A DNA stretch of 48,478 bases, the filler included, from Guillardia theta CCMP2712 (lineage: Eukaryota > Protista > Cryptophyta), in the NCBI RefSeq assembly GCF_000315625.1. It is 3 parts of 3 records of this genome, joined end to end, with 100 filler letters (N's around TTAATTAATTAA, not from the genome) between each part and the next. Parts side by side here need not be neighbours in the genome. Positions count along the whole stretch, not along the records: positions 14,936 to 38,424 come from NW_005434366.1; 2 more parts are not named here. The stretch is one strand, 5' to 3'. Positions 14,936-36,360 of the stretch are shown here, piece after piece. A program made the translations under genes and the position numbers. Below the pieces are notes generated by a model that saw only the letters and a list, made by a program, of their open reading frames with translations, was not told the DNA's origin and did no database searches. Within the stretch, counting starts at the first letter, position 1, and the number at the start of each line of letters is the position of its first letter.

Positions 14936-17900
14936 GATTCAGCGTTGATCCTGCCCACGGGTCGATCGCCTTGCGAGGTATGTTGAGACTCAGACGTGTC
15001 ATACAAGCAAGCTTCGCACAGAAGCTCGTTCTGACTGGTGACCTCGTACAAGTCTTCGAAGCTTCCTCGTCCCTGATGAAGCTTCTTGATGATGCCGTCG
15101 TACAACGTTTGCATCGAGACTTTATCATTCTTCGTGTACTGATGGAAGATCTTGTATCACTCCATCCCTTGTATCTTCTGCGGCCACCAATTGTTGAACC
15201 TGTTCTTCTGCTGGATCTGCTTGTTGTACTAGTCTGTCAATACGACGGGGATGATAACTGCTTTGCTCGCTGTCAATCTGTTCCATAGCTTGCTGAAGCT
15301 ACTTTCTCCTTGCATAGCTCCCTGCTCATCAACACACTCTGTCGATATACACAAGATGTTCACGAGACATTCATCACCAGCACCTCCACGTTCGTCACAC
15401 GGATGAATCTGACAAGTAAGACCTAGAGGGAGGTTCTCCGCCTCGTAAAGCTCCTTCACTTTTCTTTCAATATCCCGCCCACATGCTCTTGACCTCTCTC
15501 CTTGCGTGAAGATCCCTATTTGCACGGCCTCTTTGCCTGAGCTCTCCTTGTCGCTTCTCCTTCGCTTCATCCCCGGGAAGAACGCCTCCAGTCGCCTCAA
15601 GTCATCAAGCAAGTTCTCGATCTGCTCCCTCGTCGACGCATCAGCTCTCAGCACGTGCTTGTCATTGTCTTCCCGCCAGCTCACCAGCAGCGTTCGGCCC
15701 CAGCCCTTCATCACCGCCATAGAGCCGCTGCAGTCTACCTCAAAGTGTCGAGCAGCGCACAGCACGACCAGCCTGTCGATGAAGCCTGCGGGGAAGATGT
15801 TGTACTCGCACTCGACAGATGCGCACAGAGACTGCTTGTCCTTGTCCGTCACTGCTCGCTTGTGCTCATGCGTGAACGACGGGATGATGCCGGGACACAG
15901 CAGCTCTTTGCTCTTGTTGTCTGTATCCTTCAAGTCCTTCATCCCCACGCCGAGGAAGTGCGCCAGATCGCAGCCTCGCAGCAGAGCCACCGCCTCCTGC
16001 ACCTCCACATGGCTCTTGATGAAGCCTACCTCTGCTGATCTTGACACCTTCTCTGTCTTCTCTTCGAGCCAGAACTTGCTGCCTTGCTGGGGCCACAAGT
16101 ACTCCAACATGTCCTCGTCTATGATACCCAGGTGTAGCAGCTTCTTCGACTTCTTGGACTTGGTCGGGTCCTGCTGGAAGCAGTCGAGCAGGTGCTCCCA
16201 GTCATGTCGCATCACGCCCTTGAACACGTCGATCATCCACACGGGATCGATGAAGACCGTGTCCTCGACGGAGTACTTGCCTTGGTCTTTCTTGCTTTCA
16301 TCCGCACTCAGCGCATGACCGAAGTACTTGAGCACGCCCATGTCGTGCAAGAAGCTTGTCACCACCTTGTGCTCTTTCTCGCTGACCCCTGACTCTCTCA
16401 ACATCTCCTTGTACTCCTCTACCTTGACGTACGAGACAGACCCCGACTTTCGCTTCTCCACAGCCTCTCTCAGTCTCAGATAAGTCCAGGGATTCTTTCC
16501 TCCCACCACAGCAGCTCTTTTGCAGTCTTACACACAGATCGCCGCAGCTCCTTCACTCCCTGTCCCTCAAGACAGTTCACCCGGAAGCTCTCGCCTACAT
16601 TGATGACATGTAACGGCAGGATGTTCTCATCGTCTTCCTCCGCCATCTTCTTCAGCTCCTCTTCCACGCATGCCTTCACCTCCTCACACTGATCCGTCAC
16701 CTCGCTCTCCCCGGCAAGATCAATGTGCGTTACTACGAGCAACACGCTCGCTNNNNNNNNNNNNNNNNNNNNNNNNNNNNNNNNNNNNNNNNNNNNNNNN
16801 NNNNNNNNNNNNNNNNNNNNNNNNNNNNNNNNNNNNNNNNNNNNNNNNNNNNGCTCGCAGCCATGTAGAGATCATCTTCTTCAGCTCCTCCATGCCTCCC
16901 CCTCCATCCTCTTTGCTCTGCTTGTCTCGCTTCACCCTCACGCTCCACACCAGCAGGTACAAGGCCCGCCTCACGATGAAGTACTGGTTCGTCTTGGCGT
17001 AGATCTGCTGCCCCCCGAAGTCCATCACGTCAAACGTCAGCCCGTCAGCGTCCTCAGGCTTCCACTCGTGCAGGTCTATCCCGATCGTCCTCCTGTCTAC
17101 CTCGATCTTGTCCGCCTTGTCCTTGTCTGACCTCAGAGCTCTCAGCACGCTCGTCTTGCCTGCCTCTCCGTTGCCTATGAGGATGACGTTGATCCGCTTG
17201 TTCGCCTCGCTGTCTCTCTTGACACTCTGCAGGTACGTGAAAGCAGCTGCCCCTCCCTGACTGGCGATCTCAGGGGGAGGCAGCTGCAGCCTGACGCAGC
17301 CCTCACACTTGACCTCCTGCAGGCTAGACTCCATGCTGCAGAGCTCGTCCAAGGGAAGGTGGGAGAAGCTGGGGTTACCGGACACGTCGATGACTTTAAA
17401 AGCGAGGCCGAGCTTGGAGATCCAGCGAGGCAGGCTCTTCATCCTCAGATCTCGTATCACATATCGTTGCATACTATCTGTCCGCAAAGACATGTTGAGC
17501 GTGCCTTCCTCGGTGTTGTAGCAGCTCCCGAGCTCCCCGCCCGACAGGAGCTGCTTCACTTCTTCGACAGCAGAGGTATCTATCTCTTGCATCCCTAAGA
17601 TATAGTGGCACTTGACTAGATCCAGTCTCTCGGCAAATGGCTTCCCCACGTTGTTGACGTGCTCGCGGACCTTCTCGATCTTGGCGATGGCGTCCTGTAT
17701 GCTGGGTCTTGACGATACAAGATCTTGCTCGAGGTTGTGCACGCAGGAGCGTCGATCCTTGCAGTGCTGGCACATGTTTTCTTGCCTTTGATCTTCAGAT
17801 TCATCATCGTAGGAGCAAACGCAGCACTAGGAAAAAAACAGCCGCAACCCAGAGCATGCCAGCAAAGACCCGAATGGCAAAATACATGTCAGCCAGTCTT

Positions 17901-18903
17901 CTCTGACCGCATCTTGCAAGATGGTACTTACCACCTATCCAGTCCCATTCACACCCCAGCCAATGAGAAAACCCAAGAAAAAACAGAAAATGTCAGCCAA
18001 TCATCCCCTGAGCGAATCATATGATATGACACTTACATCCTATGAAGACGAATTTATTCCAGGCAAGCAAGGAAAAACCAGGAATTTGCAAAAATTAAAT
18101 GTCAAGACAATCGTCCCCTGAGTGCATCATATGATATGACACTTACTCCCTATGAAGACGAATTTGATCCATGCAAGCAAGGAAAAACCAGGAATTTTCA
18201 AAATACATGTCAGCCATATCGCCCCCTGAGCGCATGATTTTATAATCATCACTTACCAACTGTCCGGACAAATCAACAACCCATCCGATGAGAAACCGAG
18301 AAACAAACGAAACATGTCAGCCCAATCGTCCCCTGACCGCATCATATCATATGACACTTACGATCTACGAAGGCGAATTCAGTCCATGCAACCAAGGAAA
18401 AACCAGAAATTTGCAAAATACATGTCAGTCTATCGTCCCTGACCGCATCATATGAAATAACACTTACTCCCTATGATGACGAATCGAATCCATGCAAGCA
18501 AGGAAAAACCAGGAATTTGCCAAACAAACGTTAGTCCAATCGTTCCCTGACCGCATCTTTCATCATCGTCACTTACCCGCTATACCGCGCCATCCACGGT
18601 ACATCCGAGCAAATACCGACACATACATGAAAGAAATGTCAGCCAATCATCCCCTGACCGCATCTTTGAGCACTTACATACTATTCAGTCACATTCATGA
18701 CCCGTCCGATGAAACACCCACAAAAGTGCAAAGGACACGTCAGCCAATCGTTTCCCTGAACGAGCATATGCTGCACAGACTGATGCTTACCGCCTTCCGA
18801 ATAACAACATGGCAGTTCACGGCAGAACGTAAAACACTCAAAGTCAGATGACGCCTACTAGGAGCTATTCAAATTACGCATTTTGTGCTGTCGTTGGTAC
18901 CAT
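14936..18903 (-). pseudogene. Roco gene: microexon-encoded N-terminus, CxxC/CxxC module, short LRR, ROC GTPase, COR, TIR-like C-terminus; disrupted
   Basis: LRR/hinge LPRWISKL..IDVSGNP..LQLPPPEIASQG..FTYL; P-loop GNGEAGKTS; switch I RTIGID; DFGGQQIYAKTNQYF; G4-like VVTHID; COR motifs FLHDMGVLKYF, VFIDPVWMIDVFK, FPAGFIDRL. Lesions: 1-nt frameshift at ~16487 (RIP/TYLRL), in-frame TAG 15231-15229 and TGA 15159-15157 with the frame continuing to the gap. Large exon starts at acceptor ttttcctag|TGC 17826; candidate ATG 18903-18901. Confidence 0.85.
17827..18900 (-). repeat. Microexon array 1: nine 3-nt exons separated by ~100-110-nt repeated introns
   Basis: Minus-strand AG|NNN|GTAAG(T/C) at 18793-91 GCG, 18680-78 TAT, 18579-77 CGG, 18470-68 GGA, 18364-62 ATC, 18259-57 TTG, 18149-47 GGA, 18039-37 GAT, 17934-32 GTG. 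Introns carry a conserved GATGCGGTCAG-N~11-CTGACAT motif. Confidence 0.85.
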
Positions 18904-18916
18904 ACTCGACCACGAT

Positions 18917-19241
18917 CTGGAGCAACACAAGTCAGGAGGTCAAGAAAAGTGTTGAGAGGAAGTGAAGGAGCCGCCAAGAAAGGAGTTGAATGATGGAAGG
19001 ATCAGATGTGGGGGAGTAAAGCAAACATCTCCATCATCAAGCATGTCACTCAAGGTAATAGCATCTCATCCCAGCTGCTCCTTGCCTGGCACATGTCGCA
19101 GAGCATTGCGCGAAGGTTGTTAACAGAGGGTGGGGTAGGTTGAAGATTTCGGGTTGTAGGCGAATAGCTGGTAGGGGTAGTCGAATGAAGGAGGGAGGCA
19201 GGGGACTCGAATCATGCCGGTGAGAGCGATTCGATTTTATA
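18917..19241 (-). promoter_or_regulatory. Candidate TATA box (TATAAAA 19241-19235), 5'UTR exon and 5'UTR intron of the Roco gene
   Basis: TATAAAA, a possible CAG|GCAAG donor (~19086), and branch/acceptor CCTGAC..CTCCAG just before the ATG exon. All are conserved in the paralogous copy (TATAAAA 30348-30342). Confidence 0.5.
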
Positions 19242-19973
19242 AGTGAGACACTAGTAGCATTCAACGAGGGTGAGAGAGCGAAGGGTATTTGAGGTGGTAC
19301 AACCAATCGTTTGACAAGTGCTCGGGTAGCGTGAGCAAGGACAAAGGTTGTTTTTCTGTACGGGTAGGGTGGGCAAAACAAACTCAATCGTAAGGGAGAT
19401 ATTGAACAAAATGCTCAATCTTTCAAAGATTGGAGTAGATATTGAAGAAGATATTGAAATCAAGACGAATATCACGGCTGCACCCGTCCAACATGCGTTT
19501 CCTAGTGACTCCACCTACTTGCCTATCATCGATATTCTCTATATCTCTTCCTAGTCTCAAACGCATATGCCCCTACCTACCAGCTCCATGTCCCCTCCAC
19601 CTTCCCCTCCACCCCCCTCACTTTAAAGTTGACATGCCCCCAGCCCTCAGCCAACTCGACGGCTCTGAAAAGCGAAATGCTTTTGTGCTCGTGTCATCAC
19701 GCGATATCAGCGCCTGTTGTGTCTTGTTCCTGCTCCTTGGGTCTCCCAACCTGCTCTTCGACTTCCTCCCATCCCCCGCATCCTTCCCCTTGCCCCAGCT
19801 GCTTCCCCCCCTCTTGTCCCGGCTGCGTACCCTCCCACCTGCCCTCCTTCCACCGCCATGCTCCTTCATCCTCTTGCTCTTGCCCCGGCTCCTCCTTCCA
19901 TTGCCATGCTTCTCCTTCCTCTTCCTCGTGCCTTTGTCACTTTCCCCCTACACACACATTCCTGCTCCCTAGA

Positions 19974-20967
19974 ATGGTTTGGCCTGCCTTGTTCAGTTTT
20001 CCACCGTCCGAAGCGAGTCCATCATGCGGATGTTGCCAGCCGCCTTGCTGTCCATCAGACACAGCAGCGGGGACAGCGGAGACATCGGAGATGACGGGGA
20101 CAGCGGAGACATCGGAGATGACGGGGACATCGGAGATGACGGGGACAGCAGAGACATCGGAGATGATCGTTTCGGAGCCTCGCCTGCCTTGTCCGGCGGC
20201 GGGTGAGGGTGCAGATTCAGTGCAAGCAGCTGGAGACCTGGCAGATGATGTCATGACATCGGAGGTGCTCGTTGTTGGCAGCTCACAGTACGGCGCTGCA
20301 GGGGCTTTGCAGTGCCTGGACACAGATCATGAGCCGCGGGGTCGAGATGGAGAAGGTCAGGTTGACGAGTTAATCTTGCGAGCCTTGATGTCTTCGAATC
20401 TGCTTCGCCTTGTGGGGAACGCAAGCTACGTCCAGGGCTTGAAGGAGAAGATGCGGATTGAAGTGTCGCAGAGGAGGCGGGACTCGCTAGACTTTGCCGG
20501 GAAGCTTCCCTTGGCACTGAAGGCCTTGAGCATCGGCATCCCTGCCGATCAGCTTCTGATCGACGTTGCACAGGCAGGTGGGCTGCATGGCAAGAGCGAC
20601 GGGTGTATCATAGTTGGGCCCCAGAGACAGGTCAGCGGGTCGAGTCGGGGTGAACCTCTGCCGATGTGCCGAGAGCCGCTGGAGGTGAAGTCGTCCTCGT
20701 GCGGGAGTGGTGACAGGACCTTCGGCATCAAGTCCATCCGCAGGTCCTTCCGTCATCTCTTCGTGGGAAGAAGGACAACCCTAACGACTGGTCGTCCCTT
20801 GACGCTCTAGACGACAAGTGCTCCCTCGGTTAGGATGTGACGGTGACGATGAACAGCAGGAAGAGGACCGGCTGGCTCTCGCAGCACATCCGGTGGGTGG
20901 GCTTCAAGGACCTGACGCTGCAGTGGTGGCAGGCTACGGTAGAGAGCAGTGTTTTGACACTTAGGTA
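19974..20967 (+). pseudogene. Disrupted copy of the putative PD-(D/E)XK nuclease
   Basis: Near-identical to 31400-32779 (GKSDGCII...EPLEVKSS) but frameshifted near 20760, with a further ~75-nt deletion near 20832. Confidence 0.7.
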
Positions 20968-35760: not shown

Positions 35761-36360
35761 TTCCTTATTTCCTGGCAGGTTCCTTATTTCCTGGCAGGTT
35801 CCTTATTTCCTGGCAGGTTCCTTATTTCCTGGCAGGTTCCTTATTTCCTGGCAGGTTCCTTATTTCCTGGCAGGTTCCTTATTTCCTGGCAGGTTCCTTA
35901 TTTCCTGGCAGGTTCCTTATTTCCTGGCAGGTTCCTTATTTCCTGGCAGGTTCCTTATTTCCTGGCAGGTTCCTTATTTCCTGGCAGGTTCCTTATTTCC
36001 TGGCAGGTTCCTTATTTCCTGGCAGGTTCCTTATTTCCTGGCAGGTTCCTTATTTCCTGGCAGGTTCCTTATTTCCTGGCAGGTTCCTTATTTCCTGGCA
36101 GGTTCCTTATTTCCTGGCAGGTTCCTTATTTCCTGGCAGGTTCCTTATTTCCTGGCAGGTTCCTTATTTCCTCAGGGCAGGTTCCTTATTTCCTGGCAGG
36201 TTCCTTATTTCCTGGCAGGTTCCTTATTTCCTGGCAGGTTCCTTATTTCCTGGCAGGTTCCTTATTTCCTGGCAGGTTCCTTATTTCCTGGCAGGTTCCT
36301 TATTTCCTGGCAGGTTCCTTATTTCCTGGCAGGTTCCTTATTTCCTGGCAGGTTCCTTAT
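35761..36360 (+). repeat. 19-bp tandem repeat (TTCCTTATTTCCTGGCAGG) x ~31
   Basis: Near-perfect copies with one variant at ~36170. Confidence 0.97.

Follow-up and report, generated by a model that had tools for sequence, protein, structure and literature searches.

Tandem arrays of candidate single-codon exons at the 5′ end of a Roco gene and related genes of Guillardia theta

Introduction

Introners and introner-like elements, known from Micromonas, Aureococcus, fungi and dinoflagellates, are dispersed by transposition into unrelated genes. At the ratchet points of recursive splicing, as in Drosophila Ubx and long vertebrate introns, acceptor and donor adjoin directly (AG|GT), the exon has zero length and nothing is left in the mRNA. 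The micro-exon genes (MEGs) of Schistosoma mansoni are composed of symmetric exons of 3-81 bp, all multiples of 3, and their products are highly variable (PMC10526429). Isolated 3-nt microexons occur in Drosophila homothorax (micro-Ex8, PMC7392893), human MAP4K5 (PMC8632122) and RPS24 (PMC11162997), and a report on vertebrate neural microexons describes an extended region between branchpoint and 3′ splice site (PMC12871342). Here we analyse a 48,478-nt stretch of DNA from the cryptophyte Guillardia theta CCMP2712 (the window), composed of three joined parts, of which positions 14,936 to 38,424 come from NW_005434366.1. At the front of a Roco gene in that part lies an array of about 1 kb, in which a 3-nt exon and an intron of ~105 nt together form a unit that recurs in tandem.

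Like introners, the Guillardia arrays consist of many introns of one sequence family that carry their own splice signals. Instead of near-identical copies scattered across many unrelated genes, however, the units form tandem arrays (18 contigs) and are found only at the 5′ ends of one modular gene family with a shared 5′ module. Recursive splicing offers another likeness, the (in Guillardia presumed) stepwise removal of adjoining intron segments in which the next 5′ splice site abuts the previous acceptor, but in Guillardia 3 nt lie at every boundary examined, and in paralogs of the studied gene they appear in cDNA and are translated. With the MEGs the arrays share runs of very short symmetric exons, whose gain, loss or skipping keeps the frame; the comparison is one of design, not of sequence homology. 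MEGs combine variable exon sizes with long unrelated introns (up to 5 kb) and encode small secreted proteins, whereas the Guillardia exons are always 3 nt, their introns (89-127 nt) are homologous and arranged head to tail, and the linker that they encode belongs to large intracellular-type signalling proteins (Roc-COR-TIR, kinase-PARP and kinase-RING products). The remaining small exons of the array genes are also symmetric (sizes of 3, 6, 21/27, 39 and 87 nt occur), but they account for only the short N-terminal part of proteins of 1100-1300 amino acids. As with the animal 3-nt microexons, a single codon between two introns is recognised and included in mRNA; the animal examples are single or few, lie between long introns and often depend on dedicated factors, whereas up to 18 occur consecutively in Guillardia between short homologous introns. 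A long distance between branch point and acceptor before a tiny exon is also what the report on neural microexons describes, in other organisms and with other splicing factors; the Guillardia distance has a median of 60 nt from a predicted branch point, includes an AG-exclusion zone and sits within the repeated unit. The arrays are a variant of microexon and intron-duplication architecture outside the schistosome MEG, introner and recursive-splicing families, and full-text literature searches on tandem 3-nt exons, microexon arrays and Guillardia introners or microexons found no published description of them.

Results

Anatomy of the array

On the minus strand of the NW_005434366.1 part, nine sites consisting of AG, exactly 3 nt and GTAAG recur at a spacing of 101-113 nt, and Tandem Repeats Finder reports a ~108-nt repeat over the same region. 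Every repeat intron starts with GTAAG, contains the conserved core GCGGTCAGGGGACGATTGGCTGACATG followed by an AG-free zone of ~55 nt, and ends in YAG. The final intron, of 105 nt, ends with ttttcctag at 17827, and the sequence TGC TGC GTT TGC begins at 17826, 17 codons upstream of and in frame with an ATG at 17775. The open reading frame (ORF) from 17775 carries a Roc domain (E = 1.7e-11) and the next ORF a COR-A domain (1.1e-10), the order that defines Roco proteins; the full-length paralog L035 carries Roc, COR-A and TIR_2. The original prediction had been right in all of this: the nine units with their AG and GTAAG flanks, the last acceptor and the frame shared with the Roco ORF lie where it had placed them.

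Exon-by-exon homology to the paralogous locus L034, on contig C23, puts the true start at an ATG at 19106, ~200 nt upstream of the one originally proposed, with two exons predicted to precede the array; this 5′ region shows conservation in 12 paralogous loci. The counterpart of exon 1 in L034 encodes MPYNCDKCQ, the N-terminus of two G. theta proteins derived from MMETSP, P0015 (UniRef A0A7S4JL62) and P0017 (A0A7S4N5W1), and the flanks ..gca|ATG and CAG|gcaaggag are shared between the two copies. Intron 1 has the boundaries of a 168-nt GC-AG intron that is removed in the L034 transcript product; intron 2 is likewise removed there and is retained in a transcript contig of the C228 paralog (L055, see below). 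The features of the studied copy are as follows, the first four being placed by homology to L034.

19086-19106, minus strand: coding part of exon 1, ATG plus six codons (MLCDMCQ), followed by a GC donor (gcaagg)
18917-19085, minus strand: intron 1, 169 nt, GC-AG, with CTGAC shortly before the acceptor ..ctccag
18878-18916, minus strand: exon 2, 39 nt, IVVEYGTNDSTKC; the L034 counterpart, IVIEDDTNDSLKC, is present in P0015 and P0017
18794-18877, minus strand: intron 2, 84 nt, GTAATT..CTGAC..GGAAG, with an in-frame TGA at 18871-18869
18791-18793, minus strand: microexon 1, GCG (Ala), the codon that opens the array in most paralogs
18678-18680, minus strand: microexon 2, TAT (Tyr); C228 counterpart TTT
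18577-18579, minus strand: microexon 3, CGG (Arg); C228 counterpart TCG
18468-18470, minus strand: microexon 4, GGA (Gly); C228 counterpart GAA
18362-18364, minus strand: microexon 5, ATC (Ile); C228 counterpart TTC
18257-18259, minus strand: microexon 6, TTG (Leu); C228 counterpart TCG
18147-18149, minus strand: microexon 7, GGA (Gly), aligned to a C228 unit
18037-18039, minus strand: microexon 8, GAT (Asp); C228 counterpart AAA
17932-17934, minus strand: microexon 9, GTG (Val); C228 counterpart CCG
17827-18790, minus strand: span of the nine repeat-family introns, 98-110 nt each
18790-18681, 18677-18580, 18576-18471, 18467-18365 and 18361-18260, minus strand: repeat introns 1-5
18256-18150, 18146-18040, 18036-17935 and 17931-17827, minus strand: repeat introns 6-9
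14936-17826, minus strand: large exon, encoding CCVCSYDD.., MCQHCK (ATG at 17775), a leucine-rich region, Roc and COR-A

The predicted product would thus begin MLCDMCQ / IVVEYGTNDSTKC / A/Y/R/G/I/L/G/D/V / CCVCSYDD..., in which ~1.0 kb of DNA would encode nine internal residues, at predicted positions 21-29. Across the family, every coding exon that precedes the large exon has a length divisible by 3 (21/27, 39, 3, 87 and 6 nt). Splice signals are intact in all 11 introns of the studied copy, and its ORF stays open between 19106 and a gap in the assembly. The introns are of three kinds, namely the nine repeat introns (GTAAG..YAG), intron 2 (GTAATT..AAG) and intron 1 (GCAAGG..CAG), and each has the GT or GC 5′ end and AG 3′ end of U2-type introns. 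The large exon reaches the contig edge at 14936; it also contains a 100-N assembly gap (16752-16851) within the Roco ORF and, relative to the paralog L035, a 1-nt frame change near 16483-16497. Contigs from the sequencing runs X1, X3 and X12 have an extra G after 16483, and this difference in frame may reflect a mistake in the assembly instead of a lesion in a pseudogene.

Single-codon exons in transcripts of paralogs

A protein search recovered L055 (JGI 3300017164, Ga0186123_109755), a 1,411-nt JGI transcript-assembly contig that is the source of protein P0008. The 14 genomic microexons of the C228 paralog (locus L032), 42 nt in all, are contiguous in this contig at 117-158 and flanked exactly by their neighbouring exons, and the 14 GT-AG introns of 93-106 nt that separate them in the genome are absent. 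P0015 and P0017, which belong to the 90% cluster of P0009, provide a second case, in which an exon-by-exon walk along C23 explains residues 1-74 of both proteins exactly. The ATG exon (MPYNCDKCQ) is separated by the 168-nt GC-AG intron from a 39-nt exon, and this by an 84-nt intron (GTAATT...GGAAG) from eight single-codon exons (A T G T H P S V); next comes an 87-nt exon with Cys codons, followed by a further three single-codon exons (G G R) and by the CCVC exon, which leads into Roc. The microexons are therefore spliced into mRNA in C228 and C23, and in C23 they lie inside an ORF that starts from a normal ATG. The proposal that each exon holds one codon is borne out in these paralogs, where all 14 microexons of C228 and all 11 of C23, within the upper limit of 30 nt that defines microexons, lie between two removed introns and are present in cDNA; the nine of the studied copy would qualify by their alignment to C228, and its splicing like that of the paralogs is predicted from homology.

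For the studied copy, the transcript data examined were Logan contigs of X1 and X3, whose RNA origin is a guess and to which paralogs cross-map. These cover the large exon and have zero depth at 18524-19600; some X1 contigs are identical to the studied copy over 169 nt. One X1 contig of 320 nt matches 17632-17826 with 95% identity and breaks off precisely at 17826, its other 125 nt lying outside the window. A contig of genomic DNA should have continued into the conserved polypyrimidine tract and AG, so this break fits use of the acceptor at 17827. Absence of the introns from mature RNA is thus seen in L055 for C228 and in P0015 and P0017 for C23, and for the studied copy this RNA-like contig is the one RNA-level hint. 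X20, the only true RNA-seq run sampled, gave 18 reads from ~6% of the run.

Positions 1-116 of L055 keep intron 2 (84 nt, weak donor GTAATT, in-frame TGA), although all 14 repeat introns are gone. L055 may represent a regulated or inefficient retention isoform, which would shift initiation to an internal Met: owing to the in-frame TGA, it has no in-frame ATG upstream of MCRHCK. A different candidate for a spliced product, P0005 (MANDSFCSFQ-CCICY), was rejected; its source contig, L048, consists of metagenomic DNA, in which a TTG opens an ORF that simply continues through the last intron.

Splice signals of the repeat unit

Across 153 aligned units, conservation is lowest in the three exon columns on each side (~33% consensus identity) and highest (90-99%) in GTAAGT, itself at ~99%, the core GCGGTCAGGGGACGATTGGCTGACATG and the 3′ GGATAG. 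A CTRAY motif is found in 145 of the 153 units at a median of 60 nt from the 3′ splice site, and in 140 of these 145 the ~55 nt from CTGAC to the 3′ AG are free of any other AG. AG occurs in that zone at a frequency of 0.0006; the expectation is 0.04, and the 5′ part of the intron has 0.05. The family units thus show a branch-site motif, with a predicted branch point, and a first AG positioned as the acceptor, as in U2-type introns. In sequence terms, such a pattern is classically associated with a branch point in use and selection of the first AG, the branch point being predicted to lie unusually far from the acceptor. Introns in the family measure 89-127 nt, and the repeat period, an intron with its 3 nt, does not favour multiples of three (53/51/49); the repeat is therefore not translated unspliced, and in array units only the 3-nt spacers are constrained in length. 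Predicted RNA structure of the units was no better than that of shuffled sequence (z -0.4 to -1.2), and short GTCAG/CTGAC complementarity is present within units.

A family of arrays in the genome

Searching the 87-Mb genome of G. theta CCMP2712 gave ~25 arrays at ~20 loci, counted from the loci retrieved, with 186 (strict rule) to ~230 (loose rule) microexons. A two-unit probe from the studied array matches 18 contigs, its own included. The pattern AG-NNN-GTAAGT, 85-115 nt, AG-NNN-GTAAGT occurs 162 times genome-wide compared to 8 for the reversed control, and three units in a row occur 80 times compared to 0 for the reversed pattern, so the arrays are far beyond chance. Acceptor and donor are 3 nt apart at all 44 boundaries with a GTRAG donor and at one unit with a degenerate donor (GTATCA), and the longest run has up to 18 consecutive single-codon exons. 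The array design thus recurs at other loci.

The same 5′ module, consisting of an ATG exon, exon 2, arrays, small CxxC...H...C exons and a CC codon pair, was found at every array for which a downstream gene was inspected. The effector parts behind it are Roc-COR-TIR (L035), kinase-PARP (L037, L043), kinase-RING (L031) and kinase (L033). The first 120 residues of P0015 match no Pfam family. Related arrays also occur in an independent ENA assembly (ERZ930071, run ERR2281808), so they do not stem from an error in the reference assembly. Its metagenome contigs L048 and L056 pair this intron family with different codons, G G N F Q ahead of CCIC.. being one example. Over 385 nt, L048 shares 94% identity with C72, and the two metagenome contigs are from a close relative of the reference strain. 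JGI metagenome contigs searched for related loci yielded no relatives, in a collection that may omit records close to the studied genome.

Coding evidence

The 87-nt Cys-containing exon was compared over 57 nt. The rate of nonsynonymous substitution (dN) was 0.04-0.14 and that of synonymous substitution (dS) 0.1-0.57, with dN/dS of ~0.1-0.3 in most pairs, and there is purifying selection in phase 0 over these 57 nt. In the kinase-PARP paralog L037, conserved coding sequence (dN/dS 0.34) extends over 123 codons before the first Met.

Array length and codons change faster than introns

The large exons of the studied copy, L034, L035, L036 and L038 are 95-99.5% identical pairwise (dS 0.005-0.08), the coding sequence of the studied copy being ~95-97% identical to that of the other four; C228 is not comparable owing to an indel. 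The arrays of these sister genes differ completely in length and content. Codon counts are 9 in the studied copy, 8 plus 3 around the Cys exon in C23, 2 plus 10 in C149, 14 in C228 and 9 in C150, and the C149 ORF is 99.5% identical to that of C23 despite the different array. The microexons of the studied copy align one-to-one to microexons of C228, and identity over the flanking 50 nt is mostly 84-96%. Even so, eight of the nine aligned codons differ, each with a change of amino acid. Among 18 reciprocal-best intron pairs from different arrays (mean identity 92.6%), 12 flanking codons are identical, 2 synonymous and 22 amino-acid-changing; exon bases differ at 43.5% compared to 7.4% for intron bases, the orthology of units being only approximate. 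The codons are hypervariable and evolve several times faster than the flanking introns, the reverse of the usual pattern. This may reflect diversifying selection, or homogenisation of the introns by recombination or conversion together with selection keeping the codons different.

Discussion

A model for the array and its alternatives

Taken together, we consider it very likely that the studied locus is the 5′ coding part of a Roco gene (leucine-rich repeat, Roc, COR and probably TIR) in which U2-type introns separate one-codon exons that are joined into a translated linker. Under this model, ninefold amplification of one unit would have built the array that now separates a small N-terminal segment with Cys residues, encoded by exons 1 and 2, from the CCVC.. 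exon. Each unit would contribute its own GTAAGT, CTGAC ~60 nt upstream of the 3′ splice site, AG-free zone and YAG, so that each intron could be removed alone and leave exactly one codon in the mRNA, and the protein would gain the nine-residue linker A-Y-R-G-I-L-G-D-V. Because a 3-nt exon lies wholly within the U1 footprint, neighbouring introns are presumably not committed together and presumably leave in succession. Unequal recombination between the conserved introns would let arrays grow, shrink and reshuffle codon by codon, always in frame.

The original prediction opened the protein differently, with an ATG at 18903-18901, a GT donor at 18900 and a 107-nt intron, giving an N-terminal M-A-Y-R-G-I-L-G-D-V from ~1.1 kb. 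We regard that start as extremely unlikely. The letters ATG|GTACCA are indeed present and would be in phase with the microexons if spliced to 18794, where the acceptor (18795-94) had been correctly located with a CTGAC ~50 nt before it. However, GTACCA is a poor donor in a family with ~99% GTAAGT, and across 12 paralogous 5′ regions ATG and GT are combined only in the studied copy (seven have ATACC, one AAACC). The site also falls inside the 39-nt exon that is translated in the MMETSP proteins of C23: the supposed ATG would span the codons TAT|GGT out of frame, and the supposed donor is part of the GGT/ACC encoding Gly-Thr, a chance juxtaposition. The real donor would be the GTAATT at 18877, 23 nt downstream, which shortens the intron to 84 nt and turns the decapeptide into nine internal residues. 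Initiation at a GUG at 18820 and a long out-of-frame ORF from an ATG at 18810 had been entertained too and were abandoned after P0015 and P0017 had revealed both the ATG exon further upstream and the GTAATT donor.

Another possibility is that the array is an untranslated leader or is skipped as a block, translation starting at the ATG at 17775 (MCQHCK). This is how the NCBI/JGI models present the family: P0001, P0003, P0012 and P0002 (GUITHDRAFT_121310) lack any microexon, the first three, including P0012, the NCBI model of the studied copy's own 23,489-nt contig, start at the internal MCQHCK, as do the MMETSP ORFs P0009 and P0016, and P0002 starts at an ATG in the last repeat intron (MYFAIR-CCVC). 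L055, with intron 2 retained and MCRHCK as its first in-frame Met, points the same way, and in codons 1-17 (CCVC..) before the ATG at 17775, 7 of 8 variable codons change the amino acid, in a comparison where a codon-position test had no power. We nevertheless find this reading very improbable. The TGA in intron 2 accounts for ORF callers and the reference starting proteins at MCQHCK (P0001, P0003, P0009, P0012, P0016) or at an intronic ATG (P0002), such starts being the output expected from 5′-truncated or intron-retaining contigs, whereas P0015 and P0017 run as an uninterrupted ORF from the upstream ATG through the microexons. The symmetry of every upstream exon, the purifying selection on the 87-nt exon and the conserved coding sequence ahead of the first Met in L037 likewise argue for translation of this region.

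That the studied copy is a dead or silent paralog, its array a well-preserved but unexpressed relic, seems unlikely to us, though it is the alternative that bears on this copy rather than on the family. It would fit the frame change near 16483-16497 and the 100-N gap, the lack of a copy-specific transcript product in the protein collections, and the small number of reads from X20. Against it stand the 11 introns with intact splice signals, the ORF open as far as the gap, the extra G in contigs of X1, X3 and X12, and the RNA-like X1 contigs identical to this copy over 169 nt.

Several further observations weigh against the translated-linker model for the studied copy. Its exon 1 is 6 nt shorter than in the paralogs, and the frame change, gap and contig-edge cut mean that it could be a pseudogene. 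No transcript of this copy was recovered, the cDNA evidence coming from paralogs, and the X1 contig that stops at 17826 has 10 mismatches in 195 nt and may itself come from a paralog. The evidence from paralogs is not seamless either: residue 75 of P0015 is mismatched, a Q/R difference that fits the sister copy L035; the first 9 nt of L055 fit another paralog; and chimeras can arise when short reads from a family with many paralogs are assembled de novo. Two assemblies show only full inclusion and one form with intron 2 retained. Finally, stop codons are absent from phase 0 of the microexons (0/186, compared to 1/161 in phase 1, 7/161 in phase 2 and a mean of 10 in mononucleotide shuffles; three apparent stops under the looser rule are parsing artefacts), but this depletion is confounded, as AG+TAA+GT and AG+TGA+GT would create a shifted GTRAGT donor and TAG a second acceptor, many codons are co-inherited with their repeat units, and phase 1 is depleted as well. 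We have therefore downgraded it as proof of coding. With these points included, the translated linker between U2-type introns remains the reading that we favour strongly.

A possible role in diversification

Tentatively, and as a suggestion we rate as possible rather than probable, the arrays may act as a built-in diversity generator, in which introns would serve as recombination and splicing scaffolds while codons are added, deleted, swapped and mutated independently. The symmetry of every exon would also allow combinatorial skipping, perhaps. The outcome would be a hypervariable linker rich in Gly, Tyr, Arg and Trp in immune- or death-type proteins (TIR, PARP, probably metacaspase, kinase and RING). 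The suggestion stems from sister genes with dS of 0.005-0.08 that carry completely different arrays, from codons that differ at 43.5% of bases between introns 92.6% identical, and from the studied copy, in which 8 of 9 aligned codons differ from those of C228. Selection for variability is hinted at by the kinds of protein on which the arrays sit, namely TIR, PARP, kinase and probably metacaspase proteins.

Even one 3-nt exon is a curiosity that models of splice-site recognition struggle to accommodate; here ~200 such exons are spread across one gene family of a free-living alga. They form a natural test bed for how a spliceosome handles exons below the U1 footprint, including the order of intron removal, the distant branch point and the dependence on consensus donors. 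They are also a clean example of intron number growing through tandem duplication of an intron-plus-one-codon unit, a route that never breaks the frame and yields new introns together with new protein sequence. Public databases mis-annotate the protein family: the reference annotation lacks all of these exons and places starts at an internal Met or inside an intron.

Other features of the window and genome

A second array lies in the same part of the window, at 27871-30216.

30216-30190, minus strand: ATG exon (MPYNCPNCQ)
30021-29983, minus strand: exon 2
29898 to 28052, minus strand: 18 single-codon exons, A G W D E D G G W I N A Y Y G R R Y
27959-27954, minus strand: 6-nt exon TGCTGT, followed by a 3-nt exon AAT and small Cys exons

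Downstream of it, an ORF at 25021-26118 matches Peptidase_C14 (2.2e-25), and the array probably leads to this metacaspase ORF.

A few solitary or paired copies of the intron family exist (C167, C21, C113). X1 and X3 contigs resembling one intron unit reach a depth of 215-259 at 18056-18523, compared to 10-50 on the Roco exons, and have unrelated flanks; they could derive from an abundant transcript with a solitary or retained copy of the intron family.

Further AG-NNN-GTAAGT runs, spaced ~100-130 nt, occur at C116:130423-133171, C75:36993-38272, C56:349376-349693 and C92:12307-13286, and others at C12:596487-597084, C14:526439-526654 and C60:260372-260482. The introns of these seven runs look unrelated to the main family (for example purine-rich or GGGATGGG-rich); the design may have more than one origin or a much greater age.

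Other tandem repeats lie at 31536-31872, 35761-36360, 27610-27700 and 20068-20166. They include a perfect 27-nt unit repeated 12.5 times, its 18/27/45-nt relatives at 20068-20166, and a 19-nt unit repeated 31 times. The 24-nt unit at 27610-27700 encodes (ERDRKEKE)n on the minus strand and lies in the gene of the second array.

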